From Selaginella moellendorffii (Eukaryota > Plantae > Lycopodiophyta), in contig NW_003314344.1 of assembly GCF_000143415.4 (NCBI RefSeq), forward strand, positions 380,336-444,335: 64,000 bases of DNA, in the 5' to 3' direction. Shown one piece after another: positions 2,946 to 62,643 of the stretch (within the stretch, counting starts at the first letter, position 1; every line of letters starts with the position of its first letter). The notes beneath the pieces were generated by a model, which saw only the letters and a program-made list of their open reading frames with translations, did no database searches and was not told where the DNA came from. The position numbers were made by a program, and so were the translations under genes.

Positions 2946-5900
2946 TCACCTGTTATGCAATGTCCCAAGAACACCTTCAAATGTACTCTCCTTCTCTAGT
3001 GCAAAAATTGCACACCCAGTCTCTTTAGCCGCTAGCACCATCGAACCAAAACCTACTGTAGCATCAAGCATAATCCCCTTAAGAGGACAAAACAACTTTA
3101 GGAGGATTTGCATAGCCTTTGGTGAATGGTGTCGATAACCAGGGAACTCTATATGATGGTCCTCATTGATGACATTCGGGATGATATCTGTTGAGCTATC
3201 ATATCCTGGCAATGCCAAACCTGCACGCTCATCAGCTCGTGTAATACTATGATGGCAAGAGTAGCGGCAGAGAGCATGGTAGTTCCATGCTAAAACCTAT
3301 AAGGAAAAGAGGCAATCAATTTAAGATATGAAAAATAAGGAAATGTAAACCTTTTGGATTCGGCCACCTGCTCCTTTTGTTTCGACCGGGATGTTTGAGA
3401 GTAGACAACCTGATGCAAACTCAACCAATCTAGAGTCATCATTCTCCGCCATCATTGCAAGAAGACCTCCCCAAAATAAAGAACGGGGAAGAATGACTAG
3501 CATAATGCCCTTGTATCGCAACACCTTGGATGCCACATCCACCGCTTGAGAAATATGGTCCGGTCGAAGGATGTTCTAGGATGGAGTGTCATCTTGTAAA
3601 GGTGGTAACCCATCAGGCAGATCAAAGAATGTGAGGTCGATGCCAAAAGTATTGTTCATTCCCAATCCTCGCATCCATCGATGGAACATAGAAGACTCTC
3701 GGCTCACATTGTTGCAAAGTGGAAAGTAGTCCCCAATAACTATTTCCACATTGCCAACACTTCCCATAGGAGAAAGAGGGCGAACCTAAATAGTGTTCAA
3801 AACCAGGAAATATTAAAGTTAATACATGTTTTTTTTCATACCTGTTTATGTGAAGCCGATGAAGATAACTCTTGGAGGTCGTCCTCTGTAGCAGTGGGGA
3901 GGGATGGAAAGAATGCATTTGTACGTCGATGTAAAGAGTGCTGGCTGGTTTCTCCGACATCTACAACCAAATTACATTAAGCAAAGTCATTGGAAATCAA
4001 GTTCTTACTCTCTTGGACGTCCTCACTATGGAGCTACCTTTGTATATTTCGAGCAATCGGGGCTGGACGAGCAACGGCAGTAGGATCTGAGGAATGAGCA
4101 ACTGCTATAGGATGAGATGGGGCAGGAGAGTTTTCAGCCGGGTTCTCCACTCGTTCGTCTTCGGTCTGCTCAATATGAATCTCGTCCCTGTCTTGAGGCA
4201 TCTCCACTCCCTCCAAAAGTGCCTTTACAATAAAGTAGAAACATAAGTTACTACTAGGAAATTTTACTCATCAAACCTAGATGACACTCGAGGTAGAGAT
4301 CAAGCTCAAAAGGTGACGATGGCATTTGCCTCCACAACTCCAAATACCATGGACAAAGTTCTCGCTCCCATGTAGTGGAACACTGAAACTCTGGCTCATA
4401 CATACCAAGTTTCTTCCCACCAATTAAGAGCTTGAGAAAAACACTTGCTGTGTACATTGGAGCACCTAGGCAATGATTTAAATACCTACAAAAGAGTCAT
4501 GATTAAATAAACAAGTCAATTTTTTGCAATGTACCTATATGCCATGCGACATGAGAAAAATGGTTGGCCCGGCTGATTCTTGAAATCCATAAAGCTTGAG
4601 CTGCCATCAGGAAGCCATCCATCCCCAAGCTCTTGAAGGGAAGCTCAGACATATTCTGGAAGTGTTATGCCGGTGCGGGCACTAGTAAGGAACTTCGTAT
4701 CCCATACTTGAAGTAGCTCCTCGGCAGCCGCAATACTCTGAGTGATATAGAGCTTCTCCTTCATCACATTCTCAAGTTTGCTCTCCAACCTTTTATCATT
4801 GTTACGATGCCAAGTGTTGAGGAGTTCCAAGCAAGAGGTTTGTTCGTTAAAGGAGAGCTTGCTTTTTGCGATGTTATAAATCAATTCTTTAGGTGCTTTA
4901 CCATTTCCTGCAAGGACAAGGATTTCAAAGTGGAATGAAAAAGATAAAAGGGACTAACTTACTGCCACGAGAGCATATCTCTGCAATGCAATCCAACCAA
5001 TATTTATCGCGGTGAATGTCTGCAATTGCAAGTAGCTTCTTCACCTTTGATTTCTTCGAGTTCAAAATGCGCTACTCAATTTGTCGCAGTTCAAGGTTCT
5101 TTTGCACCTCATCCGTCACTTGCGTAATCTTCAAATACGAGTTTTTCTCCGCCTTGACAATTGGCTAAAAGAAAAACTTGTGAGTAGAAAACACAAGTTC
5201 ATGCAAGAAAAGGATACCTTTGCCCAGACCGCAACCAAAAAATCCATAGGCACTTGATACCAAGTAAGCAACTCTTGGCTTTTACGTGCCACAAGCTTTG
5301 CTTGAACCACTTCCATAACTTCACGACTATACAACATCTGGATTTCGTCGAGAGAAAGCATGCCAACATATCAAAGGTGCTCAATATCATGGACCAAGGT
5401 ATGTGCTTGGAAAGCAAATTGATTAAGCTTGTAATATAGTTGGTGAGAAAAAAGGTTACAAATAAAAGATTCTTACATGTTGATCTTGTGATATGCCAAG
5501 TTGAGCCTCACAGCTTGGTTTCGATCTTGTGGCTCCACAAGTGTCACTGGAACACAAATATGTCGCTTGTCATCGTCTTGGAACTTCTCTTGGATACACC
5601 TCCAAAACGCAAGCCACCGGTGGTTTATATCAATAATGAAGAACATCCGGCCTACAAAGGCTTGTGTCTCCTTGTGGCATGCCATCAAAGTATCAAACTC
5701 TTGAGATTTCCTCTGCCATATTTGATCCCAAGTTTGCTCAATCTCATGAGTAACCATGTCTATGCAATTTGTTTCGGAAAATGATGACGACACAATAAAC
5801 GATCCAGCAGTGTGCCCGAATCTAACCTCTGTGAAAGAGGTATAAATAGCCATGTTGAGGTCGTAGGCTGAGTGCACCCAGTGACTCTACTTAAGACAGC

Positions 5901-6415
5901 AAAGTGGAATCTCAAGATGTTGGGATCCTTTCCAAGCCATTTCACCTAACACCTTGCTAATAGTTCATTCTTGAGCCTGGACAATAGTCTCACGTACTTG
6001 CTCATTCAAGATCGTGTCGGCCTCTAGCATAGTTACCACCTCATTTCTGTGACCTTCAAGAGCAGCAGCATGTCCGCCATTTCCACCACCAAGATCTGCC
6101 CCACCACCTATAGCACTAGGTGCTTCATTTCTGCCACCAAGTTCCGCACCACCACCTATGGCACTACCACCAGCAGCTTCTCCTATGCTATAGCTAGCTT
6201 CTGCATTTCCACGCTCTCTAGAACCATTTGGCTCCTGCATGCTAACACCTGGATCTGGACAACACTACTCCCACCATGGTCTTCCTCCGAAGCAGCGCTT
6301 TGAACTTGTGACATGTCCCTAGTGAATCTAGCACAACAATCTAGTTGTTTTCCTGGAGAATGGGTCCATTGAGGTTGACCGGGACACTTCTTTTGTTGTG
6401 GCATGATTTATATAT
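2946..6415 (-). pseudogene. Multi-exon gene: ParB/Srx-like domain plus beta-class amino-DNA methyltransferase-like domain (decayed)
   Basis: 5473-5877 reads GSFIVS...FFIIDINHRWLAF (ParB-like DGxHR). 3576-3767 reads IVIGD...IDLTFFDLPDG..TPS*N (motif IV DLPY-like, W-to-stop). 3321-3542 reads ASKVLRYKGIMLV. 2946-3218 reads SPKAMQILLKLFCPLKGIMLDATVGFGSMVLAAKETGCAIFALEKE (motifs X-I-II). There are short GT-AG introns, a frameshift near 5880 and in-frame stops. Confidence 0.7.
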
Positions 6416-6463: not shown

Positions 6464-6846
6464 AAGAAGTTCCCTTGGCTCGTCGTCACGGAACTGATCT
6501 TTGCAGCACCAAGGGAACAAAAAAAAAGAAGAAAAGAAGAAGTTCCCTTGGCGCTGGGAAGATCGGTTCATCACCGAACCGATCTTCCCAGCACCAGGGA
6601 AAAAAAAAAAGAAGAAAAGAAGAAGTTCCCTTGGCGCTGGGAAGATCGGTTCGTCGCTGAACCGATCTTCCCAGCACCAGGGGAAAAAACAAAAAGAAGA
6701 AAAGAAGAAGTTCCCTTGGCGCTAGGAAGATCGGTTCGTCGCTGAACCGATCTTCCCAGCACCAGGGAAAAAACAAAAAGAAGAAAAGAAGAAGTTCCCT
6801 TGGCGCTAGGAAGATCGGTTCGTCGCTGAACCGATCTTCCCAGCAC
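6464..6846. repeat. Hairpin tandem array, ~84-bp unit (left half)
   Basis: Unit is GAAGAAAAGAAGAAG-TTCCCTTGGCGCTGGGAAGATCGGTTC-GTCGCT-GAACCGATCTTCCCAGCACCAGGGAA-A-tract, recurring near 6541, 6624, 6709 and 6793. The last unit is cut by the transposon insertion. Confidence 0.95.
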
Positions 6847-8476
6847 ATGCTCTATTTCGTTAAAGTGGGATTTATTCAGTAAAATGGGACTAGGTACAAA
6901 TTTTCAAGTATTTGAAAATGACGTGAAATTATATGTTTTTTGTCCAGGGGCTAGACATATCTGGGGCATGGTGACTAGCGCGGTGACTTTGTGTCCAGAC
7001 TGAGTCCATCTGGTTGTATAATAAATCTCATTGTCAAGGTGAACAAGCCGAATCTGAAGCTAAAGAAGAGCGATCGCATGCGCGCACACACTATTTGTTT
7101 GTTCATTGAGCGTGTGGTGAGCTTTCCAAGATGAACGTCATTCCTATTAGCCAGACATATAACTTAATGGTGAGAACATTTAGATATTATTCAATGTTAT
7201 CTTTTTCTAATGAATCTAATTGTGAAGGTGTAGCAAGAGGCATTGCTAGTCTAGAGAAGTCATTTAACTCATTTGACCCTTAGTGTATTTTCATGAAACT
7301 AAATAACATTCATATTATTAAGGAATTTCTCTAGTACCTTTTTTTTATGACTTAGAGGCTTGCATTTCTTTCAAAGGTGATTTAGTAAAAGGCCTGAGGG
7401 CACATGCCATTCTATTTCTCAGACCGGTATTAAGATATACTAGTGCAAAGGGAAAAAGGTATTTGGTGATCAAGTAAATGGCATGAGGGCACACGCCATT
7501 ATAAGCCTAAGTGCTAGTGGACACCTCCTTTTTGGTACTCTCAGCGGTACTATCATCCTCTCTGGGTCAGTTGTTTTGCTTTGGATTGTTGTCTCTGACG
7601 TTACTGGGGCGTTCTCGATAGTTGTTAATGTTGCCGTTTGTTCAGAAAAATGATCACCTGGAGTATAGTACGGGGAGTTTGGAAGACTTATATATTCTAC
7701 ATCTTCACCTATCTCCTTCTCCGTCTCCTTTTCTGCCTTACTTACAGATTTTGTGCTTGCCATGAGAACACTCTTCACCCTAAAATATGGAGTTTGTTGT
7801 GTTATAAAAGGAAACCAACACACACGCTACAAGGGAATGATGGTACATAAAGCACGTAAGCCCACAATATGGGTTTATGTGCCATTAATATGGGCCACAC
7901 GCCATATTATTAGATTTATGCACGTGTGATTGGTAAATGCATATGTCACATCATCTTTGTTTTACCTCACACACTATATCAGGCCTAATGAACCATATCA
8001 CATGTGCACACATGCTATATATATGGAGAAGTATTATGCAAGGATAGAAAAATTCAATGCATGATTGTGGAGAGCAATGGCATGAAGCCACATGCTAAAT
8101 AACATTTTAGAGAAAGAATTAAAATAAAAACATGCAAACAATACTGAGTGGACCAAGACTTAGAAGTGCACAATTGAATGAGGTATTTCTAATAAATATT
8201 TCACTCACCTCATATAGGAATGGCTACCACTCTCAAATGGCATATCACCTCATGCCATCACCTCGCAATTTGTTATAACAATCCGATGAATTCATATTCG
8301 GCTTGTTCACCTTGAACTTTAAGTAAGATTTGCTAGAACAACTAAGAATTTATACTTGTTATTTGTATCATCTCACCTAGGAATGGCGTAAGGCCACATG
8401 CCATCACGCCTCCTCTGATTCAGATTCGGATTGTTCACCTTGAAATAAAATACATTAGAAACTTAGTAAAGGAATA

Positions 8477-11302
8477 TTAATGAATCTCACCTTGAACCCG
8501 GGTTATGAATGCTCTTGCTGCATCTCTTGCATGGTCTAACAAGGTGATGGTGGCACTCTGCTTCCACATCCAACCATGCACAACATTATCCACCGATATG
8601 CTCATGCTGGGATCCCTTGGATTCAGCACCCATCTCTTTTCTAGGCAATCCTTCGTATATCCGGAACTTGGCTTGAACCACTCCACAGTTACATTGAAGG
8701 AGTTAGTTTCCGCATCCTCCTCTGCATCAGTGATGCAGCGCCCCACCCATATCATTTATTTTTTATTACTGGGTCTGACAAGCATGACCATTCCTTTGCA
8801 GACCTGTACTGGATTGAATGCTGAATTCGGCTTCTTGTTCCTCGGCCCACAATAGTGATCCTCAACATCGTTATCTGTCACTGCATTTCCAGAGGACATT
8901 GTTCCGCTACTATCTGGTGCTCTGGGTTCTGGCCAAAAGGACGCTTCCAATTCTTCATATACAACCGGCCCATTTTGGATAGCAGATATAATCTTCTCCC
9001 AGTATTCGAGCAAAGGCTTGCACCTCTTAAAATAGGATTCTCCACCAAACACCAACCCCCTCTTCCAGAAGGCAATATGCTGTCTAATCCCGGCCACTAT
9101 ACTTTCCTAGTCTTTGAGTCCATCCAGGTGCATCGGCCGTGGGGAACCCTGAGGAATCATAGGTTCCCCAGTTATGGGATTTCTCTTGAAGAGTTCAATG
9201 CCGTCCACTGGCAGCCACACTGTGTCCCATTCTCTCATCTTGTACCTCATCACTAGAGCACTGTCACGCATGCTGAAATGAAACTGAAGAGGCTTGGAGT
9301 GGCCAATCAGCGTTTCGGATCCGTCCCTGATGTAGCCTCTTACAAACCCCTTAAAGTCTGGAACCTCTGTCACAAGTGCAGCTTCAACAGTGCCTTTGAT
9401 GCAATTTTGGAATTCATCGTAGAGTTGTGGGAGGGTGAGGACATTGGATCGCCGAAGGGACTCTGCCAGGTGACTGAACATGGCATCGACGTCTTCATGA
9501 GTGTGCCCAACCATGAGAAAGCCAAGTGTAACCGTTTCAAATATGCCTTTGGCAACAAGCATCACCAAGTACGCGAAGACGTACATGTTTTTGTTCTCAC
9601 TGCCAGCATTGTCTGTTTGGAGCAGAAGATGGGGTGGAAGGCCACATCGGCCGCAAGAACTTCCTTGAGATTCTGCTTCGTTTGGATGAGGCTGTGCATT
9701 CACCGGGCGACCAGCCTCGTCGGAATGGCATGAGGCCTCACGTGATAACCCTACAATCTGACGGCCAACATATTCATTGGGGTGGCATGGGGCCCCACGC
9801 GATACTGCAAGCCTTTGCTCCTCCTCCAGCTGAACCCTGTATGGGGTTTGATCGACAAGGGCCTTATGCAAGGGTTGGCCGTTCAGCTCAGTCTGTGCAC
9901 TTTGCAGAGACATTAAGTGTTTTGCTAGGGATGCAATCATCATGTTTGCACCCCCGCCACCCCATAGAGGTACAAAGAAGTTCCTATAGTTCTGGGCACC
10001 ATGCCCATGAGCGATTATGCCAAACAAAGACACAGGCAGCTGCATGGATGAAGAGATTGCCTTGGGGGCAGGATTGAGTCGAGGTAAGCACGTCTTTTTC
10101 TAGTCCATTTTGTCGTGGATGATGCAGAGGTAAGAGTCAGGTCTCTCCATGGAGAGAATCCTGTTATGATAATATGCAGTTCTGTAGCTTCTCTGCTCGA
10201 TGTTGTGGTCGAGCCGCCTTCTAACCAACGTCTCTCGCTCTTGAGCGATACAAAAATTCTTCGACAAAGCCATTTTGATAGCAGTGCACTCGTCACACTT
10301 TGAAAAGCTGGAGTACTTTCCTATACTCACATCCCTGAACCTGTTGCTCCACAATCTACTAAATCTAGATTGGCTCAGCTTCCTATAGCCATTACTCTGG
10401 AGTTCCCGATTCACATCTTCCAATATGGCCCCCTTGGTATACATGGAAGGGAGAACTCGTTGGGTGTCTCGAGTTCCATCTTCCAAGAGGCGGGTTTTAT
10501 GTGGTTGCTGCTCGCTACATGTCTCGACAAACCTCTTGAAGATTGCCTCTCCATATACAACATGACCCCTGGTTTTGTGAGTACCATCGTTCCCATGGAC
10601 TGCCTGTTGAACCCTTTGTTCCTCGAACTCAGTTTTGATTCTGTAGAATGTGGTTCGAGGGACTCCATAAATGATTCTCCATGCCTTCATGCAGACCAAA
10701 CCCCTCTGGAAGACCATGCCCCCCACCTGATGTTCTGAAGCATCAACAGATGACCGTAATGCCTCATACACAAAATTGCGAGCTGCCTTCCAGGACAATG
10801 TCTTGTATCTTGCTCTCTCCTCTTCAATAGCATCCCAATCAGCATGTTGACAGCACCTCCTCTTGCAACAAGCAACTGTCGAGACCATTCGAACCTCCAT
10901 CTCCATTTTCTACCTTTTCGGTTCGTTGCTCAAATCCCTTTGGCTGCACTTTAGGAAGGTGTACTTTCTTTTCCCATAAAGAGATGTTCTGTCATCAGTT
11001 GTAGTGGTGTTTGATTGTGAATCCTTCACATTCTCAAACACTAAGTGCCTCAATTTCCACCGCACAATGCTTCCAATAGTCAGACTGTTTTCTTCTGTGT
11101 TAACAACCTCTAAAATTGCAACTCCAATATCATCCCAGCCCAATTCTTGATTAGCAACTGCATCTCTTGGATCGACAATTGTGGCTAAGCCCTCAGCTAC
11201 CACCTCCCCCTCGGGGTTGTTTAGAAACACCTTTGCCTGAATCCATGTAGCACAGTTCTTAAGATCCACGGAGGGAACATGCATCACACTTGCGAAGGCC
11301 AT
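8477..11302 (-). pseudogene. Sola-like (DUF7869-type) DDD transposase, one ~940-codon frame with 4 premature stops
   Basis: ORFs 10910-11302, 10100-10906, 9107-10045, 8756-9097 and 8477-8755 share one frame. Motifs: CCKRRCC, VCMKAW, SKCDECT, IIHDKMD*KK, LLLQTDNAGSENKN, FLMVGHTHEDVDAMFS. Confidence 0.85.
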
Positions 11303-11639
11303 TCTGAAAGTGCAGAAAAGAAGTTAAGACCATACAAAAAATAATTGGAGAATGGCCTAAATCATAACATACCAAACAACCTTAATAGCATGAGACCACA
11401 TGCCATTATTCAAACATGCTATTGACACCCACGTGAAATTTCGCATTCACAAAATTGGCATGAGGCCTCATGCCATCTTGATATACACACAGCTGCAGGC
11501 AAGTAAAAACATACATGACAATACGCTAGCCATGAAATTGCAAGGGCCCAAGATGGCATGTGGCCTCATGCCATTTCTAAATGTGGTCCTAAGCCATTCC
11601 ATGGTGAACATACCAGGAAGCACAAGTGTCGAATATCAA

Positions 11640-11880
11640 GAGGAAGCGGTAGCCACACCAAAGACAGTGCCGCTCGCAACACCGCAACTACTTGTAGCAC
11701 CGCTCGCAACACCACAACTGCTCATAGCGCCGCTTGCACAAACTACCACTCGCATAAACTGCCGCTCGCAATGGCGCTCACAATGCCGCAACCGCTCGTA
11801 GACGCATAAACCACAGCTCACAATGCCGCTTACACAAGCAGCGCTCACTGCGCTCAGCGGAACCAAGAACACGGCGCACA
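11640..11880. repeat. Short imperfect tandem repeats (GCCGCTCGCAA-like) upstream of the transposase
   Basis: Repeated (G/A)CCGCTCGCAA/CACCGCAAC units are visible. Confidence 0.7.
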
Positions 11881-11923
11881 AAAATGATAGACCTAGGAAT
11901 GAGTTCGAGAATTCAAAAATAAC

Positions 11924-13845
11924 ACACGCTTGAACGTCACATCAAATCCTCTGGCAAACCAGATCTTATGATTCCTCTGACAAATTTCAAACTGAGTAGC
12001 TTCTAGACTTTGCTGTCGGAGGTTGAACTTTGTCACATCATGTCCTTGCCTCGATCCAGCTGTGCCATGTCAGTGATTCGAACTTTGCCATGCCACGTCA
12101 GCGATCCGCGCCAAGATTATTCGCCATGTAAAGGAATAATTATGCTGTGTGTGTACGTCCATTTATGGCAATATAAGGCCACACACCATTCAAAGAATAA
12201 TGCTAGTCGAGCATTTTTTGGTGCATTTTTTGGTTCAAAATTGCATGAGCCCACACGCTATAAAGTTTACCTGTACCAAAAATAGAAACAGCTTTATTTA
12301 CTTGGGAATTTAAGTGGTTGAGGCATTTTTAAACTTACAAACACATGCCCTACTTACATTCCTTTGGTTGCTTAAAATTCAAAAATATTATAAACCTTTC
12401 TTTTTGCATTTTCAATGTTTTCAATTATGGTTTTTGATTTTCGCAGGACTAGCCTAGTAATCTATTTGCATCCCGTCATGTTTATAGCTAGCTTTCGTTT
12501 GTCCCCTTCGCTAGCCTGAGATACATCTGCTTGGCATCTGCCTCTTACAGCATTTGCCCAGAAAGGGCATCTTTCTTCACACAGCATTTGCCACATGTTT
12601 AGGGTTTAGGGTTTAAGGTTTAGCAATTCAGTAGCTTGATAAACATGCAAATACAGAACTTGATGCAAAATCCTTTGATATGTCACAATGCCCCTAGGAC
12701 CATAAACACATTTCAATAGAGAGGGTCCTTTCATTTCATAACTCCTTACGTAGATCTTGGTGAAACTAAAGTTAGTGAAGTTAGTTTTTTGTGATCCCGC
12801 ATCTGATTGTGATGTCCCTTTGCAGTGTCGATGGAAAGGTCAATGCACACCAAACTGTAAAATCTTGGAGCAAAATAACGGTCGGATCTATGGCAAATGC
12901 CCCTGAAATATTGTAAGGCTCGTGTGGTCTCATATGGTGTCTGATCGAGATCCTTCTTTGCAGGGTCATCAAGAAAGACATTGTATACCATTCTGTAAAA
13001 TCTAGTTGTGATCTAACGGTTGGATCTCCAGAAAACTCAAAAAAATCTCGCGCATGTCAGAATATTCTAGGAATATACTCCTATGTGCCCCTGAAAATGG
13101 CATGCGGCCCCACGCCATTCAAGAGATAACGCCAAATGACGCCGAGCATTTTTTGGTGCATTTTTTGGGATCAAAATTGCATGAGCCCACACGCTTGAAC
13201 GTCACATCAAATCCTCTGACAAACCAGATATTATAATTCCTCTGACAAATTTCAAACTGAGTAGCTTCTAGACTTTGCTGTCGGACGTTGAACTTTGTCA
13301 CATCATGTCCTTGCCTCGATCCAGCTGTGCCATGTCAGTGATTCGAACTTTGCCATGCTATGTCAGCGATCCGCGCCAAGATTATTCGCCGTGTAACTGC
13401 TCGGCATCTGCCTCTTACAGCATTTGCCCAGAAAGGGCATCTTTCTTCACGCAGCATTTGCCACATGTTTAGGGTTTAGGGTATAGCAATTCAATAGCTT
13501 GATAAACATGCAAATACAGAACTTGATGCAAAATCCTTTGATATGTCAGGACTATAAACACATTTCAATAGAGAGGGTCCTTTCATTTCATAACTCCTTA
13601 CGTAGATCTTGGTGAAACTAGAGTTAGTGAAGTTAGTTTTTTGTGATCCCGCATCTGATTATGATGTCCCTTTGCAGTGTCGATGGAAAGGTTAATGCAC
13701 ACACAACTGTAGAATCTTGGAGCAAAATAACAGTCAGATTTATGGCAAATGCCCCTGAAACATTGTAAGGCTCGTGTGGTCTCATGTGGTGTCCGATCGA
13801 GATCCTTCTTTGCAGGGTCATCAAGAAGGACATTGTATACCATTC
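11924..13845. repeat. Internal direct duplication in the spacer between the two transposon genes
   Basis: 11924-12129 matches 13188-13393, and 12531-12993 matches 13403-13845 at high identity. Both copies contain TTTAGGG repeats (12598-12623, 13468-13481). Confidence 0.9.
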
Positions 13846-14737
13846 TTTATTTAGCTGAACATTTGGCATTTTTGGAAATACAAGATGCTTTGGAATATCC
13901 AATCATGCATGGTATAAATATAGCGAGGGTATTAAATGATATCCCAATCATGATCTTTCTTTTGGATTTCGCGTGCATGCAGTCCGAGGAATGATGATGT
14001 TGCGGATTTCTTTTAGATTTCACGTGCATGCATGCGCGCGGCGATCCAGAAATTAATGGTGGCGCCCAAGTCCGAGGAATGATGACGTTGCGGGATTACC
14101 AACCGTCGTGACATTTCGCGCGTGTGAGATTAGGTTTTGCATTTTGCTTCGTACTCGTGCTTGCATCGCGCTCCCACTCGCGATCACGCTCACATTCGCG
14201 CTCATCTACCTTCTCTACAGGTTTCTCGTGTGCATCGGCGTCCACTCGCGCTTGCATCACACTCGCGCTTGCATCGCGCTCGTGTGCATCGGCGTCCACT
14301 TCAAGACACACCCAGTTTGTAACTTCGCCGCCAACTTCGCCACCCACACGCAGCCCACTTGGCATCCCGGGAGATTTCAGCGCCACTCTCCAACTGTAAG
14401 TGGCAGAGTAGCCTTGCTGCTACGATCCGCTACACACATAGTGCACATTCGCTAGCGAGTCTGGCCTTGATTGTCACGCCTCCATTCGGCTTCAAATGGT
14501 AAGTCTTTTAGGCCAAGTAGAAAATGGCATGAGGCCACATGCCATTCAGTAGCAACATTGGCATGCACCGATTGGGCTCTCGAGTGCAGTCCGGTTACAG
14601 ATGGCGTGTAGCCTCACGCCATCTTAGGATGCAGCCTCAAGACATCTGATGCAGTGGTGAATGGCGTGTGGCCTCACGTTATTTCCAGTTGCTAGCTTTT
14701 CATCTGTCAACTCTAATTGTTGTGCATTTCTGAACAG

Positions 14738-17700
14738 GTGAGGAATTGCGTTCTTCTTCCAGCCACTGTCAATGTGGATGCAGAGAAGGGGGAGGAGCTC
14801 ACCAGTTGGACTTTCGGGATGGAAGGCGAGGATCTGAGGCTGTACAATACAGATGGTGGGAGAAAAGAATGCATGGGGATCCTCATCCAAGTGACAGACA
14901 CTCCATGCAGTTCCATGCAAGAATATGGACTGGCACTTGTGGTAGAAACAGCGTCCGCCTTCAAGATCCACCTTGCACATCCTAGCGGCTTCCCGGAGGG
15001 GGGCAGCGGCTATGAGGAATTCCTAGAGGGAGATAGGGAGAGGTTGCTCTGGGTTCAACTAAAGAAGCCACAAAAACCAGAACAAGGATGTGCACTAGCA
15101 ACTAGCGCCTGGCAGGTAAGCCTCGTTGCATGTGGCATAGCATGTGGCCTCACGCCATTTCCATTGCAGGAATTCTCGAGTTTTCTCTCGAAAACACTGG
15201 GGGTCAATGACACACTCAGCATCCATAACATTCTACTCGCGACAAAAGTTGTTTTTAACAAATGGGTAGATGTGTTGAGGAAGTACCATGACGGGGAGTT
15301 GCTAAACTCAATGGGTGTGGAGGACGGCCGGAAGCCCAATGATTTGAAGCTCAACGCCTTGCGTTTCTCGCGGTCTCTAGACGACGACGACCTTCTGACA
15401 GTGGCTAATGCTCTTCTACGTGGTGAGGTAGTCTTCAACAAGACCAAAATGACTCCCGGCCATATTGTGACATAGGAGGACTTGTGCACGACTCTGAGAG
15501 CTCATGCGCTATTGAAGGATTGGATCTTCGAGCAAGTGGCCGTGGAGAGGGTGAGCATCGACACCACGCAAGAGATGATGGAAGAGCTGGAGTTGTCAAA
15601 TGAAGACATCGACGAGTACGTGAAGGGGGCCCCCAAGTTCATCGATCTGCTGCGGGATGCCACGAAAAGTAAAGCTGAGAAGTTGGATCAGTATCCAAAT
15701 TTCATTAAAAGGGATGTCGACCGCCGGCTTCAGAAACAGCTCGACCCCGCAGCAGAGGCCTATCGAGAACCTTACTGGGTATACGTGAATTCGGATGAGG
15801 ATCAAAGGTGGAGGAGCATCGTTTCCCGCGGAGATGAGCAGGTCAAGAACATCTTTTGTGTGATGAACTTCACAAATGAGGAGATCACTCATGCAGACGA
15901 AGTCAGCTCCATCATTGACTTAATGGTGGGACTTGCGGAGGTGGAATCGTGAGTCCACTATATGATCTACGACTCCGAATCCTATCACAAGTTCTGGAAG
16001 GCCTTGAACGAGGTGAAGGCTCGGTTGAAAGGCAAGGAGATGCGGGAGATCCATGGGATAATGGCTAAGAAGAAGATACCGACGAATGTCCGCATCTTCA
16101 CACTTGCCCTTGTTATTAGTCTTGTAGCAGAGTGGGACTGGAGTGACTTCCCAGCTTCATTCGACAAGGCCGATCGAATTGATCTGAGGGAGGTCAATTT
16201 ACCCGTGCCTGAGGAACTGAAGATGGCTATAGAGCTTTCGAATCCAAAGAAAGCTCCAGGTGCAGCATGGGAAATGCTCAGCTGGGTCTTCAACGCAATA
16301 GCGGGTGGGTCACCTACTTCCGACTCCAAGGGCAAATGCGTTGTCGAGTACAACTGCGGCAGACTATTCTTTTGAGCCGCACTACTCAAGGGTGTCCCGT
16401 GTGTTGCGGTGACAAACTCCATTGAAGAGGTGACTTCAATGGAGCATATAATTACAGTTGCCAAAGAAAAACAGTATTTTCTCTGTGAATCTGGTGAGTA
16501 CGCACTTTAAGTTTAAATGTTATCTCACAAGCTCTGTATGCAGGAGCGTGGCCACCCCCAGATGCTGAAACGGCGTTAACAGCTACTGTTGAAGATACCC
16601 ATGTTGGGCCGAGCTCACAACCTGCACAAGGTAAGGTCACGTGAGGCCTCACGCCATTTTGATTATAGATCGTTGTGAATATTCAGACACGAGGACTGAA
16701 AAGCGCACTGGTGGCGCATCGAAGAAGGATAAACAGACAAGCAATAGGAAAAAAGGAGGTACAAATTATATTTGCAATGGCGTGTGGTCTCATGCCATTC
16801 CTTGCAGGAGACACTTCTTCAAAGGCAAAACAGGCAAGCACCAGCCAAACTCAAACTGACAGTGGTCATAAAAAGCGAAAGCACGTTGGACAGTCGTCGG
16901 GATCAGAGGCGTTTGATTCGAAAAGGAAGAAGGGCAACGAAAAGATGATAGGTAATGTCTCGCGGTTATGGCGTGTGTGCTCATGCCATTCATTGCAGAT
17001 CAAGGGCTAAGTGAAAGCAGCCAATCACCACCTCCTGACTCAGATTCCTATGGCGGACTCCCCTTCCCCAATCTCAATGGAGAGGTACAATGGATGAGGG
17101 ATGCTTTTCAAGTCAGGGCCACGTTTTTCTCATCTCATCATCTTCGAAGGGTGCAAGAACGTGCAGAAACCATGTTAAGACAGTCGGGTGAGGATACGGT
17201 CCTAGGTCACGCACTAAAACAAGCTATGGATGTCTTGTATTTTGAGATGGAGACTCGGCCAGATGATTTTCCCAAGATGGTCCTGGAAGAACAAGCCATC
17301 TAGCCTGAGCAGCCTATGGAAGAAATGCAGGAGGGGGATGAGGAGCCAGAGAAAGATAATGAGCAGGAAGAGCAGAAGGACGAAGAGGAGGACAAAGAAG
17401 AGGAGGACGAAGAAGAGGAGGACGAAGAAGAGGAGGACGAAGAGGACTTGGATGGTCCTCACAATGGTGACGATCACAATAACGACGACGACGATGATGA
17501 CGACGATGGCCAGCCTGAGGTGGCCAAAGAGCAGCGGAGGAAGGTCATACAAGGTAAACCATCAGGTAAATAATAGTACATCCATTCCTAACCTTTTACC
17601 ATTTCTAACATTGTCCATGTAGGTCGCAGAGCAAATGGTAAGTAGAGATTATTCAGTTGAATTAAGATACAAACTCTAGCCTTTAGTGTCGAGGAAGGAT

Positions 17701-18958
17701 AGTGCTAAGCAAGGGTCAAAACGTATGTCCAATCCTTCAGAATCAGCAATGCGCCCAAGTGATATCGGTCCTAGTTCCTCAATAGTAGTTGATGGTAAAT
17801 ACAGTATAGTCGATTCAATGTGCTAATGGCACCAGCTGAAATGGCGTGTGATCACATGCCATCGGAACCACCCCATGCCACTATTGAGCCAGTTGTACCA
17901 GAGTCTACAGCTGAAATGGCATGTGCCCACACGCCATCGAATGCGATTGACCCCACATTGCAGAGGAGAGTATTTCCGCCCTTCACGTTTCCTCGACCAA
18001 AACCCTCTCAACGACCATCGGGAGCACCATTCGCTAATATTGTAGATGGTAAAATTGACTTGTACCATTTTTTATGCTGACGCATTTCATTTTAGAGTCA
18101 CGGCGAAGGTACTGTATCGTTTTTGATTTGAACGGTGTCCTTTTCTCCCATGAGCGTGGCTCATCCTCGAATGTCACTGCACCCTCCAAAGCCTGCGGTC
18201 GCAAGTTGGTCAAAAGAGACAGATTCACATTAATCACACGGGAGAAACTGCGGGATCTAATAATGACCATGCGACACTTAAAACAGAGGGCCGGGTTCAA
18301 TTTGCAATTGGGAGTTTGGACATCCATGATGCGCCACAATGCATTAACGTTGCTACAGATGATGCACGATCAAACGCGAGTAATATTACCATTTGACTTT
18401 CTCCTAACGCAGGAGGATTGCTTGACTATGGTCCATGTGAGGGGTAGCAAGCCCATCTTCGTCAAGCCAGAGGCTGTAGTGATGAACCGGACTGCTAGCT
18501 CAAGTGAAATCCTCATCATCGATGACTCGCCGATTAAAACTGCAGCGAACACGCACACATATGCAGTGCACCCCATCTCTTGCAGTATGGAAACTAGGGA
18601 GAAGAAACCGTATGTTCTGGGGGACCTTGCAAAACGGCTTGGAGCGATGGTGATAGAGAACTGGCCAGTCCAGGAGGTGGCTGCAGAAGTCAACCAAATG
18701 GCAGATGGAACGGTATATCAGAAGCCATTTGATCGGACAGACACCAGTCATCATTTATGGCATGTATATTGTCTAGCCAAGCACTATCCGCATCTCCATA
18801 ATCTGCTCAACCGGATGGGTTCTTCGACCACTGAACATGAGCGTGGACGTATTAGAGAAGAGATGGCATTACTATTGGGTTTAAATCCTGATAGTGTGGA
18901 GAGTGATGAAATTCCAAGATTATTGTATAGGCATTGGAGGCAAAAAATAACAGTTTGA
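14738..18958 (+). pseudogene. Transposon cargo gene: helical region, degenerate MTase-like fold, acidic linker and FCP1/NIF-type HAD phosphatase domain
   Basis: ORFs 14717-15475, 15482-15952 and 15962-16375 are in frame across single stops. The motif KKAPGAAWEMLSWVF...KGKCVVEYNCGRLFF*AALLKGVPCVAV is MTase-like. Phase-1 introns (16494-16543, 16631-16686, 16759-16807, 16952-16998, 17554-17622, 17638-17686, 17795 to 17835 or 17910, 18049-18095) chain in frame into 18096-18958. Confidence 0.6.
18074..18958 (+). CDS. FCP1-homology (NIF/HAD) phosphatase-like domain, open terminal exon
   Basis: CIVFDLNGVL (motif I, DLNG variant), LGVWTSMMRHN (motif II), LLTQEDC, KPIFVK, ILIIDDSPIKTAAN (motif IV). 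Confidence 0.85.
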   Translation: MLTHFILESRRRYCIVFDLNGVLFSHERGSSSNVTAPSKACGRKLVKRDRFTLITREKLRDLIMTMRHLKQRAGFNLQLGVWTSMMRHNALTLLQMMHDQTRVILPFDFLLTQEDCLTMVHVRGSKPIFVKPEAVVMNRTASSSEILIIDDSPIKTAANTHTYAVHPISCSMETREKKPYVLGDLAKRLGAMVIENWPVQEVAAEVNQMADGTVYQKPFDRTDTSHHLWHVYCLAKHYPHLHNLLNRMGSSTTEHERGRIREEMALLLGLNPDSVESDEIPRLLYRHWRQKITV

Positions 18959-19400
18959 GATGGCATGTATTTATTTAAAAATGTAACTTATTATGGCATG
19001 GGGTTCCATGCCATTGTATTAATATTAAAAGACAATTCTTTGAGAGGATTTGCATTATACTAGAAGTGTTACAGCATGTTATTGGAAGTCTACGAAGTTG
19101 TTTTATTAATAAGGGGAAAGTAAAGATTGAATGGGGACTTGGGCTCCACCTAGACTCGGAGCAACTGAGCCAATATTAAAAGGATGGAAAGAAATTGGAC
19201 GACGATGACAAAGAGAAGAGAGAGGTGAAGCAGTGGCAGGGGGAGGAGAAGTGATTGAGTAGACATTTCCTTGTTTAAAATAAAATGGCATGTGCCTTAA
19301 TGCAGTTGAATTTTGTTATATTTATATACTATATAAAGGTTTGGAAACCTTATTTTACAAGTGGGATAATGACAATTCCCACTTTAACGAAATAGAGCTT

Positions 19401-19990
19401 GCACCAGGGAAAAAAAAAAAGAAGAAAAGAAGAAATTCCCTTGGCACTGGGAAGATCAGTTCGTCGCCGAACCGATCTTCACAGCACCAAGGGAACAAAA
19501 AAAAAGAAGAAAAGAAGAAGTTCCCTTGGTGCTGGGAAGATCAGTTTGTCGCCGAACCAATCTTCCCAGCACCAAGGGAAAAAAAAAAGAAGAAAAGAAG
19601 AAGTTCCCTTAGCGCTGGGAAGATCGGTTCGTCACCGAACCGATCTTCCCAGCACCAAGGGAAAAGAAAAAGAAGAAAAGAAGAAGTTCCCTTGGCGCTG
19701 GGAAGATCAGTTCGTTGCTGAACCAATCTTCCCAGGACCAAGGGAAAAAAAAAAGAAGAAAAGAAGAAGTTCCCTTGGCGCTGGGAAGATCAATTCGTCG
19801 CCAAACCGATCTTCCCAGCACCAAGGGAAAAAAAACAGAAGAAAAGAAGAAGTTCCCTTGGCGCTGGGAAGATCGGTTCGTTGCCGAACTGATCTTCTTA
19901 GCGCCAATGGAACGACAAGAAACAAAAAAAAAACCCAAAACCTGATGTGCTGGGAAGATTGGTTCGCTGCCAAGCTGATCATTCCAGCAC
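19401..19990. repeat. Hairpin tandem array, ~84-bp unit (right half)
   Basis: Same unit and orientation as 6464-6846. About six units (near 19434, 19519, 19602, 19685, 19768, 19851) plus a degenerate one. Confidence 0.95.
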
Positions 19991-27062: not shown

Positions 27063-30000
27063 ATGAAGCCGGGAGGGAAGAATGAGAAAGGAGGCTACCA
27101 TGCCGTGCCTCCACCGCCTTCACTGTATGGTCAGTATCCGTTCCAGTGCCAGCCGGTGTCCAAGCCCCGGACGAGATCTGCTGGAGGCACCGAGGATTTA
27201 GCTGCCAGGGAGAGGGATCGAGATCGGGATGGGGAGAAGAAATTTCGGAAGAGGCCCAGTCGCAAGTCCAAGCAGTTTGTTTCTCCTGACAATGGATCAG
27301 GTAAGTTTTCTTTCAGTGATTCCTCGTTGTTTTCCTTTGATCTTTGTGGAGAGCGCATTCTCATCTTCTCATCTCCTTTAGTTGCAGGAGTGGAGATTTT
27401 TAACTCGTGTGATGAGAGGGCGTCGCCGACGGGCAGTCCGTTCTCCCCCAACTTTTCTGTGCAAAGATCTAGAGATTATCACGTCGTCAAGACGCTCTAC
27501 AAGAACGGGAAGTACTCGGAGCTCGAGTTTAAAGAGTTCACGGAAACGCTGCCACCTTATGGGCCGGCTATCAACAACAATCACGACCAGCCGAGCAGCA
27601 GCAATTCCGTTGCCTACGCCAGTCCTGGCAAAGGCGCAAGTCCGCTGTCTACACGATTCTACGCTGATACAGACACCAATTTCCAGTTGATGAAGGATCC
27701 AGTTGCACCACAGATTTTTCCAGAGCATTGGTCGCTTCCTAAAGTAAATGAAGCCATGCAGGTATCCGTTTTCTCCGTTCTCTTCGCTCATTTCTGGTCT
27801 TACGCAATATGTGCTCTTTTCGTTCAGTCTGGGCGTGTTTTTTCTTGCTCCTTGAGAGTAAATGCTCACAACCGAAGTGAGGTACGTAATCCTTCCATTT
27901 CTTTTGAGGTGTATACGTGATCATTGTGTGGTTGCCTAGGCTTACGCCACAGTCGACGGACTTTCCGTAGATATCTTGATCGAGGGAGCCTGTGCTCAGA
28001 ATCGTGCAGTAAGTTCCTCGTGTTAGTTTTTTCCTTCGAGAATTGACCTGGTTTTTCGTTTTGCAGCTTGAAGGGGATTTAGTTGCACTTGTTCTTGATC
28101 CGCCTAATTTATGGCCCAGGATGAAGGGCCTTAACAACAATCGGACTGATCGAGTGGTAACTGCGAGTAGTATAGCTGTGACAAACCAAAGTTTCAGTAG
28201 TGGTGAAGGCGTACAGGTTTCTAGAGAGATACGTTTAGAAGAGGAGGTAGTCATAGAAAGTGTTGGAAGTAGCAACCAGGTTGTAGAAAGTAGTGAGGAT
28301 TCGGGTAGTTTACTGTCAGGCCCGGGGTCGACGGCGCTAGAAAAAGTTCAGGCATTGCTCCAAGCTACACCGGGTAAAAGGCCTACTGGGAAAGTAGTGT
28401 CTATTTTATCAAAGTCTCGCCGGCGTGATGCGGTGGTCGGATTTCTCTCTGTCAAGTTCCAGCCGCCAACGAGAAATCAAATGGTTCTCACTCCAGTTGA
28501 TGCCAAGTTTCCGAAGATGGTGGTTTTACCTGATAGCCTTCCGGAAGTTATAGCTCAAAGGTTGCGGGACGGGGATCGTAAGATGGGGAATGAGCTTTTA
28601 GCAGCGTGTGTTGATCGCTGGGACTGTAACAGTCCTTATCCTCTCGCGATCATCACACATTGCTTGGGACAAGCTGGGGAACTAGAGGCACAGACAGCGG
28701 CTATTTTATTCGAGCACGCGGTTCACAGTGCCGAGTTCCCTCCGGAGGCGATGGCTTGTCTTCCTCGTGTTCCGTGGAGTATTCCGAAGAAGGAGCTACA
28801 GAGACGAAGGGACTTGCGCTCACGTAGAGTGTTCACAATCGATCCAGTCACTGCCAGGGACTTGGACGATGCACTGTCGGTGGAGCATCTCGGGGATGGT
28901 TTAACGAGAGTTGGAGTACACATCGCAGATGTTTCTTACTTCGTCCATGCTGGCTCGGGTTTAGACAAAGAAGCACAGCAGCGGTCGACGAGTGTGTACT
29001 TGATCGAACAGGTGCTTCCAATGCTTCCTCGACTGCTCTGCGAGGAGCTCTGCTCGCTACAGCCCGGAGTAGACAGGTTAGCATTTTCGGTGATGTGGGA
29101 TCTAGATTCAACAGGACAGATTGTCAAGCAGTGGATAGGTAGAACTGCGATCAAGTCATGCTGCAAGCTAAGTTATGGTGATGCCCAAGAGATCATTGAC
29201 GGGACTTTCAGCGAGAAACCAGGTCTTTCGGGAAACTTCAGCTGGCAGGAAGTGGCCGCTGATATCAAGACTTTGTACAACATTGCCAAGCAGCTAGAAG
29301 AGAGTAGAATTAGGGACGGAGCACTACGTCTAGACACTGGGAAGCTCGTCTTTGCTCTAGATGGGGATGGGAATCCCCACGAGACGAGCTTCTACGAGCA
29401 GATGGAATCCAACAAGCTGGTGCAGGAGTTCATGCTTCTGGCTAACGTGAGCGTCGCCAAAGTGATATCGAGAGCGTTTCCCGACTGTGCACTCCTGAGG
29501 CGTCATCCTGAACCGAGCTCACGTAAGCTTCTCGAGTTCCAAGAGTTTTGCAAGAAGCACGGGTTTGTGCTGAAGACGGACTCTTCGGCGGACTTGCATG
29601 CGTCCCTGGAAGTACTGAGGGAGGAGCTCAAGGACGACCCGGTTCTTCTCAGCATCGTTACACTCTACGCCACCAAACCGATGCAGGTGGCGAAGTACTT
29701 TTGCACGGGCCGGGACAAGGACGGTGACTGGGGTCACTATGCCTTGGCCATGCCTGTTTACACGCACTTCACATCTCCGATTCGAAGATATCCCGACATC
29801 GTCGTGCACCGGACACTGACAGCCGCTCTCGAGGCCGAAAAGGTGTTGAACAAAAGCCTCACAGGTCCCGAGGATCTGGTCTCAACCAAGGACTATGAGG
29901 TACTCCAGTTGGCTGCTTCAAAGCACAGGATCTCTGATCCCGCTGAGATGGCTTTGCTTGCGGACCATTGCAACGAAAGGAAAATGGCAAGCAAGAACGT

Positions 30001-30587
30001 TCAAGAGGCGACTGACAGGCTCTACCTGTGGACTATGCTACAGAGAAGAAAGGTAACCTTTTCTTTCGTCTTTCCTTCATCCAAGACAGTATCTTATCAG
30101 TGTAAGCTTCTGGTTGCAGGGTCTGTTATCAGATGCGTGCGTTGTTGGTCTGGGACCAAAGTTCATGTCGCTGTACGTCTCCAAAATCGCGGTAAGTGAA
30201 TTTCGCCTGGTTTTCCTTGGCGGACTAATGGACGCCATCTCTCACCAGATGGAGCGCCGTTTATACTACGACGAAGTAGAGGGTCTCAAGGTAGACTGGC
30301 TCGAGAACACTGGTACACTGGTTCTGGATTACTGCCGCCCGAGGCAACACTCTCGAAAGGCCAAGTGCCGAAGCATCTCTGACGTCGCAGTTGTGTCCAA
30401 TCCGGCAATGGATCCTGACGACGAGACTGGTAATCTCGACAGGTTAACCAGGATCGAGCCAGAAGCCATGCCTCTCACCCTTCGCTTGTTCTCACACATC
30501 CCAGTTCTTATCCATGCTCTCGGTGGTGATAGCTCCCCTCTCGACATAGGTGTTCGTGTCTACGTTACCTCATACTTCTTCTCCTAG
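27063..30587 (+). CDS. DIS3L2: DIS3-like exonuclease 2 (RNase II/RNB family; SOV-like)
   Basis: LRVNAHNRSEAY, FTIDPVTARDLDDALS, GVHIADVS, YTHFTSPIRRYPD. Exons 27063-27300, 27388-27761, 27828-27881, 27940-28008, 28067-30052, 30120-30191 and 30249-30587 have GT-AG introns. Confidence 0.93.
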
Positions 30588-36636: not shown

Positions 36637-38213
36637 ATGACTATGGATCTTCTCCCATTTAGTTTGAGCGCCTTCATGCTGCTTGTTTTAACTTCCATCC
36701 CTCTCTGGTTTCTTCTTGCTTCTTTAACTAGAAGAAGAAATCTTGGAAAACTCCCTCCAGGACCATTCAATTTGCCAGTCATTGGCTGTCTTCACATGCT
36801 TGGCTCGCTCCCTCACATCTCACTCCACAAGCTCTCCCAAAAATATGGCGATGTGATGTACTTGAAGCTTGGGACGAGGTCCACCGTTATCATCAGCTCT
36901 GGGAGAGCTGCCAGAGAGATTGTCAAGCTCCATAACCTCAAGTTTGCGTCTAAAGTCCCATTGATCTCTGGCAAATACTTTGGGAACGATTACAGTGGTA
37001 TAGCTTTCAGCCAATACACTCCAGAAGTGAAGTTCTATAGGAAAATTATCAACACTCACTTGCTCTCCCCGACCAAGCTCAAGATTTACGATGGAATCCG
37101 TCACGAGGAGCAGCGCCGTCTCGCTCGATCTCTCAGTGACGAGCGAGGAAATCCGGTCCTCCTGCGGCAAAAGCTCCACAATATGAACATGAACGTGATA
37201 ACTTACATGCTGTTTGGGAAGCGCTTCTGTGGACACTACAACAACACTGTGAATGTTGACGGGTTTGTGCAAGTGATAGTGGACATTTTGAGGCTGGCTG
37301 GGGTTTTCAACGTGAGCGATTATATCCCGGGAATTCGCTGGCTGGACGTTCAAGGTTTGGAGAAGCAGTACAAGCACCTTATGGACAGGGTAAACAGGCA
37401 CCTCCTTTCAATCTTGCAAGACCGGCGAGTGAATCCTCCGGTTTTCACCAGCGAGGAGCCCATAGCTTTCATTGACGTGCTCATTTCCATGGAAGAAAAG
37501 CTCTCAGACATCACCATAATCTCACTCTTGCTTGTAAGTTTTTTATAACCGTTGGTTTCTTAGCTTAACATTGGAAAAATGGAATCTCACAGGATCTGTT
37601 GCTGGGTGCGGTCGATACTTCGGCTCTTCTGCTAGAATGGGCAATGGCGGAGCTGTTCCGGCATCCAGTAGAGCTATCAAGAGCTCAGATTCAGATAGAC
37701 GCGGTAGTCGGCAAAGAAAAACTTGTGGACGAGTCGGACATCTTAAAGCTTCCATACATTGACGCTATAGTCAAGGAAACAATGAGGCTCCGCTCGGTGG
37801 CTCCGCTATCTCTTCCCAAACAAGTCCAGGGAGGCCCCATTAAGCTCAGCGGCTACACCATCCCGAACGGTACCACGATTTACATCAACAGCTACTCGAT
37901 TGGCATCGACGAGAGGTTTTGGAAAGACCCTCTAGAGTTTCAGCCACAACGTTTCTTCGACTTGCCAGACGTCGATGTTTTTGGCCATAACTTTAACTTT
38001 CTTCCGTTTGGAACAGGGAGGAGAGTGTGTCCCGGTGCTAAACTTGGATTTGATGCTGTCCAGATTGGTCTTGCGACGCTCGTCCAAGGATTCGACTGGA
38101 AGCTGGATGCTCCGGGGAATATGAACATGGATCAAACCTTTGGACTGGTTTGTCACAAGAGTCAACCTCTCGTGGCTATCCCAGTCCCAAGGCTGGACTC
38201 TCATATTTACTAA
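36637..38213 (+). CDS. Cytochrome P450, CYP71 clan (2 exons, intron 37534-37592)
   Basis: N-terminal TM segment, LPPGP hinge, I-helix GAVDTS, KETMR, PQRF and heme motif PFGTGRRVCPG. Confidence 0.93.
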
Positions 38214-61887: not shown

Positions 61888-62643
61888 GAATGGAAGGCAA
61901 AACACAGCAGTGATAAGTCGTACACTAAATGGGAATGGGAATGAGGTCTTGCTTTTGCTTGACTTTGTCTCATCCCAGTAACAATATGGAGGCAGCGAGC
62001 CAATGTGTTGTCTTAGAAGTCGTGTTTGAGTTAAGGTTTTAAAGGACGGCATCTCAGGTTTAATGCCCTGTGTATGGTTAGCAGCAACATTGGTTTGGTA
62101 TTCTAATTTTACTTTAGATTTATTCTTTTTCTTTGAAGTTTGTGTTTTTAGTTAATAGAAGTGTGTATTTTTAGAGGTATCAACATTGTCCTTGTTTAAG
62201 AATGTTGTTGATGTTTAAGTGGATAAACCAATCTAGAAGATCAAATTAAGCTAACACAATAACACATCATAGCATATCTAAAGTCTTAACTTTTAAATCA
62301 ATGTCATTATCAATTACTCTTTATATCAAACATCACAAAACCTTTTTTTTTTTTTGTTCAATTCTATGTTTTTATTTGGGTGCTAAAACATAAAACATGT
62401 AATATAATGGTAGAGTTATGCTACAGAAGAATAAAATAGCATTACACTATGAGAAAATAATGTTTATGAGCTTGAGTGGATTTTTCAGTTTAATAACTTT
62501 GATAATGAGATAATGATTTCATCAAGATGTGTTATTCTTTTTTTTTTGCCCTATTATGTTTTATGTTTATATTTTTTGAATCATTTTCAAACCATTTACT
62601 CTTTTATGTGTGTTATACCAAGTGTCATAGTTTAAATCATACG

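Follow-up and report, generated by a model that had tools for sequence, protein, structure and literature searches.

Reviews describe Sola elements as DNA transposons with DDD transposases and 4-bp target-site duplications (TSDs), 2-9 kb in length and up to >15 kb, and place them on record in the moss Physcomitrella. The insect Sola1 elements are 0.3-2.8 kb long, encode a 630-aa transposase only, are accompanied by miniature inverted-repeat transposable elements and show a 4-bp TSD at AWWT targets (PMC3845634). Sola1-1_Ec32 of Ectocarpus is a 21.5-kb giant with a 1,104-aa ParB-like/methylase gene on the opposite strand (Genome Biol 2025, PMC12477816). The Plavaka (KDZ) giants of Bostrychia carry the accessory genes PAG2 and PAG3 (bioRxiv 10.1101/2025.02.11.637652); the ParB-like PAG3 adjoins tandem inverted repeats, and both binding and modification of its own transposon have been proposed (10.1101/2025.02.11.637652). 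Here we examine a 64,000-nucleotide stretch of the lycophyte Selaginella moellendorffii (contig NW_003314344.1, positions 380,336 to 444,335; the window), in which a 12,554-bp transposon bears a transposase gene on the minus strand and, divergent from it, an accessory (cargo) gene on the plus strand. We consider it highly probable that this is a decayed copy of a high-copy, cut-and-paste transposon of the Sola1 superfamily, with terminal inverted repeats (TIRs) and an integral accessory gene. Our literature search found no paper describing Sola in Selaginella with these genes.

The boundaries of the element were defined by its TIRs and by the satellite that it interrupts, as follows.

6847-19400: transposon with complete ends, 12,554 bp
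6847-6870, plus strand: left TIR, ATGCTCTATTTCGTTAAAGTGGGA, with a perfect 22-bp core; the family consensus begins AAGCTC
19377-19400, minus strand: right TIR, reverse complement AAGCTCTATTTCGTTAAAGTGGGA
6843-6846: left TSD copy, GCAC, from comparison with intact satellite units
19401-19404: right TSD copy, GCAC
6483-6846: left part of the interrupted satellite (Tandem Repeats Finder: period 84, 4.3 copies, 94% matches)
19401-19912: right part of the interrupted satellite (period 83, 6.1 copies)

The 22-bp TIR core, GCTCTATTTCGTTAAAGTGGGA, occurs at exactly two sites in the 64 kb, 6849-6870 on the plus strand and 19377-19398 on the minus strand, with no mismatch at either, and no such pair is expected by chance. 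The 84-bp unit of the satellite is itself a 60-nt inverted repeat, that is, a long hairpin, and eight units without an interruption have CTTCCCAGCACCAGGG or a sequence close to it. In the interrupted unit CTTCCCAGCAC is followed by the element and then by GCACCAGGG; at the left junction the intact units have CCCAGCACCAGGG, compared with CCCAGCAC abutting the element. Because the interrupted unit contains exactly one GCAC more than the intact units, the TSD is 4 bp long, and the empty site can be reconstructed. The TIR and satellite-unit analysis thus upholds the TIRs, the GCAC duplication, the empty site and the divergent arrangement of transposase (minus strand) and cargo (plus strand) given in a preliminary description of this DNA. 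The ends are intact, as that description has it, but neither gene is, each having four in-frame stops.

Two further copies of the family bear on the exact termini. A sister copy on a Logan contig (L002) terminates in ...AAATAGAGCTT, with A rather than G as the next base, and on a contig of another copy from run X3 the match to the window ceases exactly at 19400 and then diverges. Both observations favour ends of AAGCTC...GAGCTT with a 4-bp TSD over the 2-bp CA duplication, with each end longer by 1 bp, that the preliminary description had left as an alternative. The family termini AAGCTC...GAGCTT form a 24-bp perfect repeat, as seen in L002, and since the left end of L002 reads AAGCTC, the T at 6848 is private to the window copy.

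The gene that places the element in its superfamily lies in the left half and has the following features.

8479-11302, minus strand: Sola1 transposase gene, a single frame of ~940 codons with no frameshift and four in-frame stops
10910-10912, 10100-10102 and 9107-9109 (each TAG) and 8756-8758 (TAA): the in-frame stops
10103-10123, minus strand: motif with the first catalytic Asp, IIHDKMD, followed by Q in intact copies
9230-9643, minus strand: DUF7869 domain (Pfam PF25273, E = 5.8e-43)
9587-9619, minus strand: second catalytic motif, QTDNAGSENKN
9476-9508, minus strand: third catalytic motif, GHTHEDVDAMF

The transposase has 3,703 homologues in a representative library; among its relatives are proteins from Riccia sorocarpa (a liverwort), Chara braunii and Branchiostoma. 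Across 20 aligned homologues the residues Q-x-D-N...N-K-N...G-H-T-H-x-D-x-D-x-x-F are invariant or nearly so, and the sequence DKMDQxKT, upstream of the DUF7869 core motifs, is likewise conserved among homologues. Gln occupies the positions of the first two stops in two near-identical intact relatives (P0001 and P0151), and the C-terminus is conserved with a further protein, P0153. As all four stops are TAG or TAA, reassignment of these codons was considered as an explanation and rejected: the host genes use the standard code with long open reading frames, the cargo contains in-frame TGA, and at two of the sites Gln is found in the intact sister proteins.

Over an ungapped stretch of 55 residues the transposase core is identical to the curated Sola1-1_Ec32 transposase at 27 positions (49%, counted by eye); the Ectocarpus core reads QVDNTVAENKNNYLMGILAAMVGRGIMRTVTLCFMMVGHTHIQIDQIFSCFAKAV (QVDNTVAENKN...MMVGHTHIQIDQIFS), compared with QTDNAGSENKN...GHTHEDVDAMFSHLAESL in the window. 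According to its authors, the best blastp hit of the Sola1-1_Ec32 transposase is Repbase Sola1-1_PPa (PMC12477816 supplement), and the Ectocarpus element has a 4-bp TSD, termini that begin AA and a target 'biased towards ending in A' (PMC12477816). We file the Selaginella element under Sola1 because its core matches that of Sola1-1_Ec32 and because the 4-bp TSD and the AA start are also common to both. The element thereby combines a 4-bp TSD, TIRs and a D-D-D triad transposase homologous to a curated Sola1 protein, and the Sola-type affiliation first proposed can be made specific to Sola1 on the 4-bp TSD and the D...DNxxxxNKN...GHTHxDxD core.

Some structural and profile comparisons lean instead towards Zator/ISAzo13 (TP36). 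Bacterial ISAzo13 transposases are among the Atlas structure neighbours, one DUF7869 cluster has 11% of its members matched by PF07592, and the DD~40D spacing, together with weak structural hits to Mos1 and Sleeping Beauty, recalls the IS630-Tc1-mariner group, to which Zator is allied. The hits in question come from a Foldseek search against the PDB with the AlphaFold model of P0151 (m0e15c252bebf; pLDDT 73), which returned no significant match and, weakly, the Mos1 and Sleeping Beauty cores. However, Zator/ISAzo13 elements have a TSD of 3 bp, not the 4 bp of the window element, a PF07592 search of 20 family members gives no hit at E values as high as 10, and the core has the 49% identity to a curated Sola1 transposase given above. 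We therefore regard membership of Zator as extremely improbable.

Outside the catalytic core, the N-terminus of the transposase (10913-11302, minus strand) appears in the model as tandem small β-barrels with weak structural hits to Tudor, Spindlin, Agenet and KOW folds, and a conserved C-terminal block, FV.VRP...WLG.A...W..P (8479-8755, minus strand), resembles a chromo/Tudor-type module. The barrels and the block, neither with a significant match, may be candidate chromatin readers that steer integration. The N-terminus also has a weak match to Pfam Transposase_23 (TNP1; E = 0.014).

The second gene of the element is described by a predicted model with the following parts.

14738-18958, plus strand: accessory gene, 10 exons and about 1,258 codons, with its stop TGA at 18956
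14738-15115, 15170-16493, 16544-16630, 16669-16758 and 16808-16951: exons 1-5
16999-17553, 17630-17637, 17680-17794, 17836-18048 and 18096-18958: exons 6-10
15473 (TAG), 15950 (TGA), 16373 (TGA) and 17301 (TAG): internal stops
18110-18556, plus strand: NIF/FCP1-like HAD phosphatase domain at the C-terminus of the protein (Pfam PF03031, E = 3.5e-6)

On the plus strand a single frame interrupted only by stops extends from 14717 to 16510, and removal of nine GT..AG introns of 38-76 nt, seven of them not multiples of 3, gives one continuous frame through the gene, which is very unlikely to arise by chance. At least two of the four internal stops are private decay, since the majority reading in the family is TAC at 15473-15475 and CAG at 17301-17303. 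The C-terminal domain scores 27.2 bits with PF03031, compared with a Pfam gathering cut-off of 21.8, and the middle of the protein contains basic stretches resembling nuclear localization signals and a long acidic tract. A search with the phosphatase piece gave no PDB sequence match and, in a protein database, one irrelevant NIF protein from a compact genome; the piece encoded by exons 1 and 2 had no homologue in large protein databases. The cargo has no Pfam match to N6/N4 methyltransferases, and no DPPY-like motif is visible in it. Any likeness of the cargo to ParB or to methylases would rest on context and on motifs recognized by eye, including the resemblance to Riccia described below, and lacks statistical support.

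In the leader of the cargo gene, some 170-200 reads of RNA run X26 match a single 38-bp stretch (14393-14431) and nothing else there; on either side of the match the reads continue into conserved sequence that is unlike the window, and the match reflects a short similarity to some expressed transcript.

We assessed the abundance of the cargo relative to the ends of the element in DNA runs. As many as 25,468 contigs of run X1 were placed on 13441-19440, and their depth is roughly even from the cargo gene through the terminus; about 60% of the same interval is present in each of 17 small runs of one sample. From these contig counts and depths, the family is high-copy and the cargo, in line with the preliminary description, is integral to it and not a one-off capture. 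These data bear directly on the alternative of passive, Pack-type capture, in which the plus-strand gene would be a fragment of a host gene with no role for the element. Such a capture would fit the lack of any homologue of the N-terminal 530 residues in protein databases and the many stops in the window copy. It is opposed by the equal abundance of cargo and terminus, by the extension of the element's own palindromes (described below) through the cargo leader and introns, by the recurrence of the divergent two-gene layout both in Ectocarpus Sola1-1 and in a Sola1 relative from a liverwort, and by the privacy of two of the four cargo stops to this copy. Hence we regard capture as highly improbable, and the gene as integral to the family.

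The window copy itself has decayed. With four nonsense codons in each gene, it cannot make either protein, and it could move only if intact sister copies supply transposase. Where the window departs from the family majority, it has T or A against C or G in about 80% of cases, and 13 of 17 T sites among the differences listed lie in a CG or CHG context, which is the signature of methylated-cytosine deamination in a silenced plant repeat; the nonsense codons themselves derive mainly from the C-to-T and G-to-A decay typical of methylated plant repeats. The sister copy L002, 96.9% identical to window 11476-9413, has undergone internal deletion: window position 9413, in the transposase gene, is joined through 4 filler bases to the left subterminal sequence 6980-6849 (L002:2079-2216), and the terminus is still perfect. 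A search for the TIR in metagenome contigs returned 0 matches. Contigs from three runs break from the window exactly at 15046 and 17828, on both sides, which suggests that members of the family are mosaics, with the segment 15046-17828 joined to other sequence. Given its high copy number, open reading frames of the family are likely to contaminate gene annotations, of which P0151 in UniParc is an example.

Throughout its length the element carries a 22-bp palindrome, ATGGCRTG-N6-CAYGCCAT. When up to 3 arm mismatches are allowed, 25 copies are found in the window, every one of them within the element, which accounts for 20% of its length; none is expected in shuffled sequence. The copies span 7073-19306 at a mean spacing of roughly 0.5 kb, and start at the positions listed below. 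The palindrome and the TIR have no sequence in common.

7073, 7389, 7478, 7997, 8077, 8237 and 8383: seven palindromes downstream of the transposase
9725 and 9782: two in the disordered linker of the transposase
11385, 11455 and 11553: three upstream of the transposase
12240 and 13097: two in the intergenic region
14524, 14601 and 14661: three in the cargo leader
15137, 16636, 16777 and 16968: four at the centres of cargo mini-introns
17841 and 17916: two in a cargo linker exon (or alternative intron)
18993 and 19285: two downstream of the cargo

A comparable arrangement is found in the liverwort Riccia sorocarpa, in which one locus (L004; GCA_046195345.1, CM100795.1; L004:4565-14864) contains a DUF7869 transposase and a divergent partner gene. 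The last open reading frame of the partner matches the N6_N4_Mtase domain (PF01555, E = 2e-7) with a clear motif I; the partner gene has DIPY and AGSGTT motifs and is ParB-like by eye. The locus holds 22 copies of a 16-bp palindrome, TGTATGCGCGCATACA, all within the element span of ~10 kb. Common to the Riccia and Selaginella elements are the divergent transposase and partner genes and the element-specific palindromes in intergenic, intronic and flanking positions. They differ in that TGTATGCGCGCATACA is a 16-mer unrelated to the Selaginella palindrome, in that the Riccia partner has a methylase motif and no phosphatase domain, and in that the identity of the Riccia transposase to the family, where they align, is only about 24-36%. 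With a single copy to work from, TIRs could not be delimited at L004.

With Sola1-1_Ec32 the Selaginella element shares the transposase core QxDNxxxENKN...MVGHTHxxxDxxFS, the 4-bp TSD, the AA termini and giant size, as well as an opposite-strand accessory gene of >1,100 aa and a high copy number with many pseudogenised copies. In contrast, the Ectocarpus accessory gene combines a ParB-like part with a DNA methyltransferase, neither of which is statistically detectable in the Selaginella cargo, whereas the FCP1/NIF-like phosphatase domain of the latter has not been reported in Ectocarpus. The TIRs of Sola1-1_Ec32 are 282 bp long, compared with 24 bp here, a palindrome array is not mentioned in PMC12477816, and the Selaginella host is a land plant. 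The Plavaka elements resemble the Selaginella element in pairing an accessory protein with element-borne inverted repeats. They belong to a different transposase superfamily (KDZ/Plavaka), their repeats stand in tandem next to the gene rather than as 25 dispersed single palindromes, and their effectors are a 2OG-oxygenase and a methylase/SET protein rather than a HAD phosphatase. With the insect Sola1 elements the Selaginella element has in common the 4-bp TSD and, as a weak likeness seen by eye, a terminal AAAGTGG at the same offset (positions 16-22); the insect elements differ in being small and in their AWWT targets, compared with GCAC and AAAG/CTTT in the Selaginella family.

These comparisons also correct a statement of the preliminary description. 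It had characterized Sola elements as usually small with a transposase only, whereas the review range is that given at the outset and the 21.5-kb Sola1 element with its opposite-strand ParB-like/methylase gene was already published. Since that architecture and the idea of self-recognition were both published in 2025 for algae, neither is new in kind. Apparently not reported before are the land-plant hosts, the phosphatase module and the dispersed palindromes placed partly in mini-introns.

The features of the element can be assembled into a provisional scheme. The transposase would bind the AAGCTCTATTTCGTTAAAGTGGGA ends and would excise and reinsert the element by a 4-bp staggered cut. The accessory protein would be a nuclear factor that recognizes the element's own 22-bp palindromes, which would be kept out of coding sequence by placement in leaders, mini-introns and linkers, and it would act locally on the chromatin of the element or on the transcription machinery there. 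Such a role would parallel that of the algal ParB-like/methylase accessory proteins, for which binding and modification of the transposon that encodes them have been proposed. The anti-silencing role suggested in the preliminary description would be speculative. In its full form, the scheme is that of a land-plant transposon with a self-recognition system of its own, made up of the accessory protein and the palindromes and comparable to ParB/parS. The N-terminal region of the protein would bind palindromes spaced over the whole element, and the FCP1-like domain would dephosphorylate the C-terminal domain (CTD) of RNA polymerase II or another chromatin-bound substrate at the element. The palindromes would be preserved in purpose-built mini-introns and linkers, and sites would in this way tile the coding regions; the unrelated palindrome of Riccia would reflect co-evolution of protein and site. 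By analogy with the algal systems we put this full form forward tentatively, and regard it as rather unlikely to hold in every part.

The palindromes might alternatively be binding sites of the transposase, as are the enhancer motifs found subterminally or internally in Ac/Ds or En/Spm, with the accessory protein acting elsewhere. In favour of this, the transposase has extra N-terminal β-barrel domains, a CCx3CC zinc motif and helix-turn-helix-like helices, and palindromes lie on both sides of its gene. On the other hand, the transposase must recognize the TIR, with which the palindrome has no sequence in common, the sites are dispersed across the whole 12.5 kb and not clustered at the ends, and palindrome arrays accompany the partner gene at Riccia L004 and are not seen at the partner-less DUF7869 loci L005-L007. 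We hold this explanation, too, to be rather doubtful. The palindromes might also act as RNA, as hairpins for the splicing of short introns or as sources of small RNAs, or they might be footprints of introner-like mini-insertions. In favour of this are the four predicted introns of 38-54 nt that are each built on one palindrome, with GT upstream and a pyrimidine tract and CAG just downstream of it. Two of these introns, and a 50-nt intron without a palindrome (16494-16543), show T-to-C differences from the majority, which fits neutral decay. Most palindromes are outside introns, however (seven downstream and three upstream of the transposase, two intergenic, and others in 3' flanks), and no copy occurs in the remaining 51 kb of the window, host introns of comparable length among it, making an RNA-level role or origin distinctly unlikely. 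Recognition of the palindromes by the accessory protein has the advantage of being accessible to experiment: accessory proteins for self-recognition and modification are a recent proposal from work on algal genomes, none of them tested so far, and a 22-bp palindrome in 25 element-specific copies is a compact and well-defined candidate site that makes the idea testable. The element also extends the two-gene layout to land plants, in a lycophyte and a liverwort relative, and adds a new effector module, the CTD-phosphatase-like domain.

Several observations weigh against the reading of the element as a Sola1 transposon with a functional accessory partner. The evidence for the TSD is thin, consisting of one complete insertion and one further end, and neither GCAC (window copy) nor AAAG/CTTT (L002) conforms to the AWWT target preference that is a hallmark of insect Sola1, although this preference may not be defining outside animals, since Ectocarpus Sola1-1 departs from it as well. 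The family majority also appears to have the TGA at 15950. Splicing of the cargo is without RNA support, with no expression of the cargo in RNA run X26, and contigs of X20 are colinear through two of the predicted mini-introns, although these contigs may derive from DNA or from unspliced RNA. Motif I of the phosphatase domain reads DLNGV in the window copy and not DxDx(T/V), its second Asp being replaced by Asn; the AAC codon could derive from GAC through the G-to-A decay seen throughout this copy. The first ~530 residues of the accessory protein gave no Pfam match even at E up to 10, no PDB sequence match and nothing convincing in the Atlas, and the AlphaFold single-sequence model of this N-terminus, with a pLDDT of 36, is unusable. 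A BLASTP comparison of the cargo with the Riccia partner reached a best E of 0.05, over 12 residues just before motif I. Finally, the layout is not universal, as the DUF7869 loci L005-L007 have neither partner gene nor palindromes.

Between its divergent genes the element has a central region with repeats of its own.

11923-13847: central intergenic region, with an internal duplication of ~0.85-1.3 kb and TTTAGGG-type repeats
11923-12131 and 13188-13396: first pair of duplicated segments
12527-12995 and 13397-13847: second pair of duplicated segments

The duplication is made up of the direct repeat families D2, D4, D6 and D7, which are 95-97% identical. Telomere-like TTTAGGG-type repeats lie near 12600 and 13470, and a DNA contig of another copy has a similar telomere-like insert at 14871/14958.

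In the surroundings of the element, the interrupted satellite (6483-6846 and 19401-19912), with its tandem 60-nt hairpins, is immediately upstream of a putative ParB/methylase gene on the minus strand (2946-6415). Pfam gave no match in four open reading frame fragments of this gene, the element and its cargo and transposase pieces showed no similarity to it or to the rest of the window, and no TIRs of a larger element enclosing the satellite were found. By analogy with the inverted repeats beside ParB-like genes in red algae, the satellite and the neighboring gene could belong to another element. Elsewhere the window contains ordinary plant genes for a DIS3-like RNB exonuclease, two P450s, a GT47 exostosin and an AP-3 β-adaptin, together with a Ty3/gypsy pol remnant; the spans of host genes and remnant are 27063-30199, 36637-38213, 41800-44300, 51135-52505, 53555-55851 and 60850-62052. 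The introns of the host genes in the window are also short, at ~57 nt.

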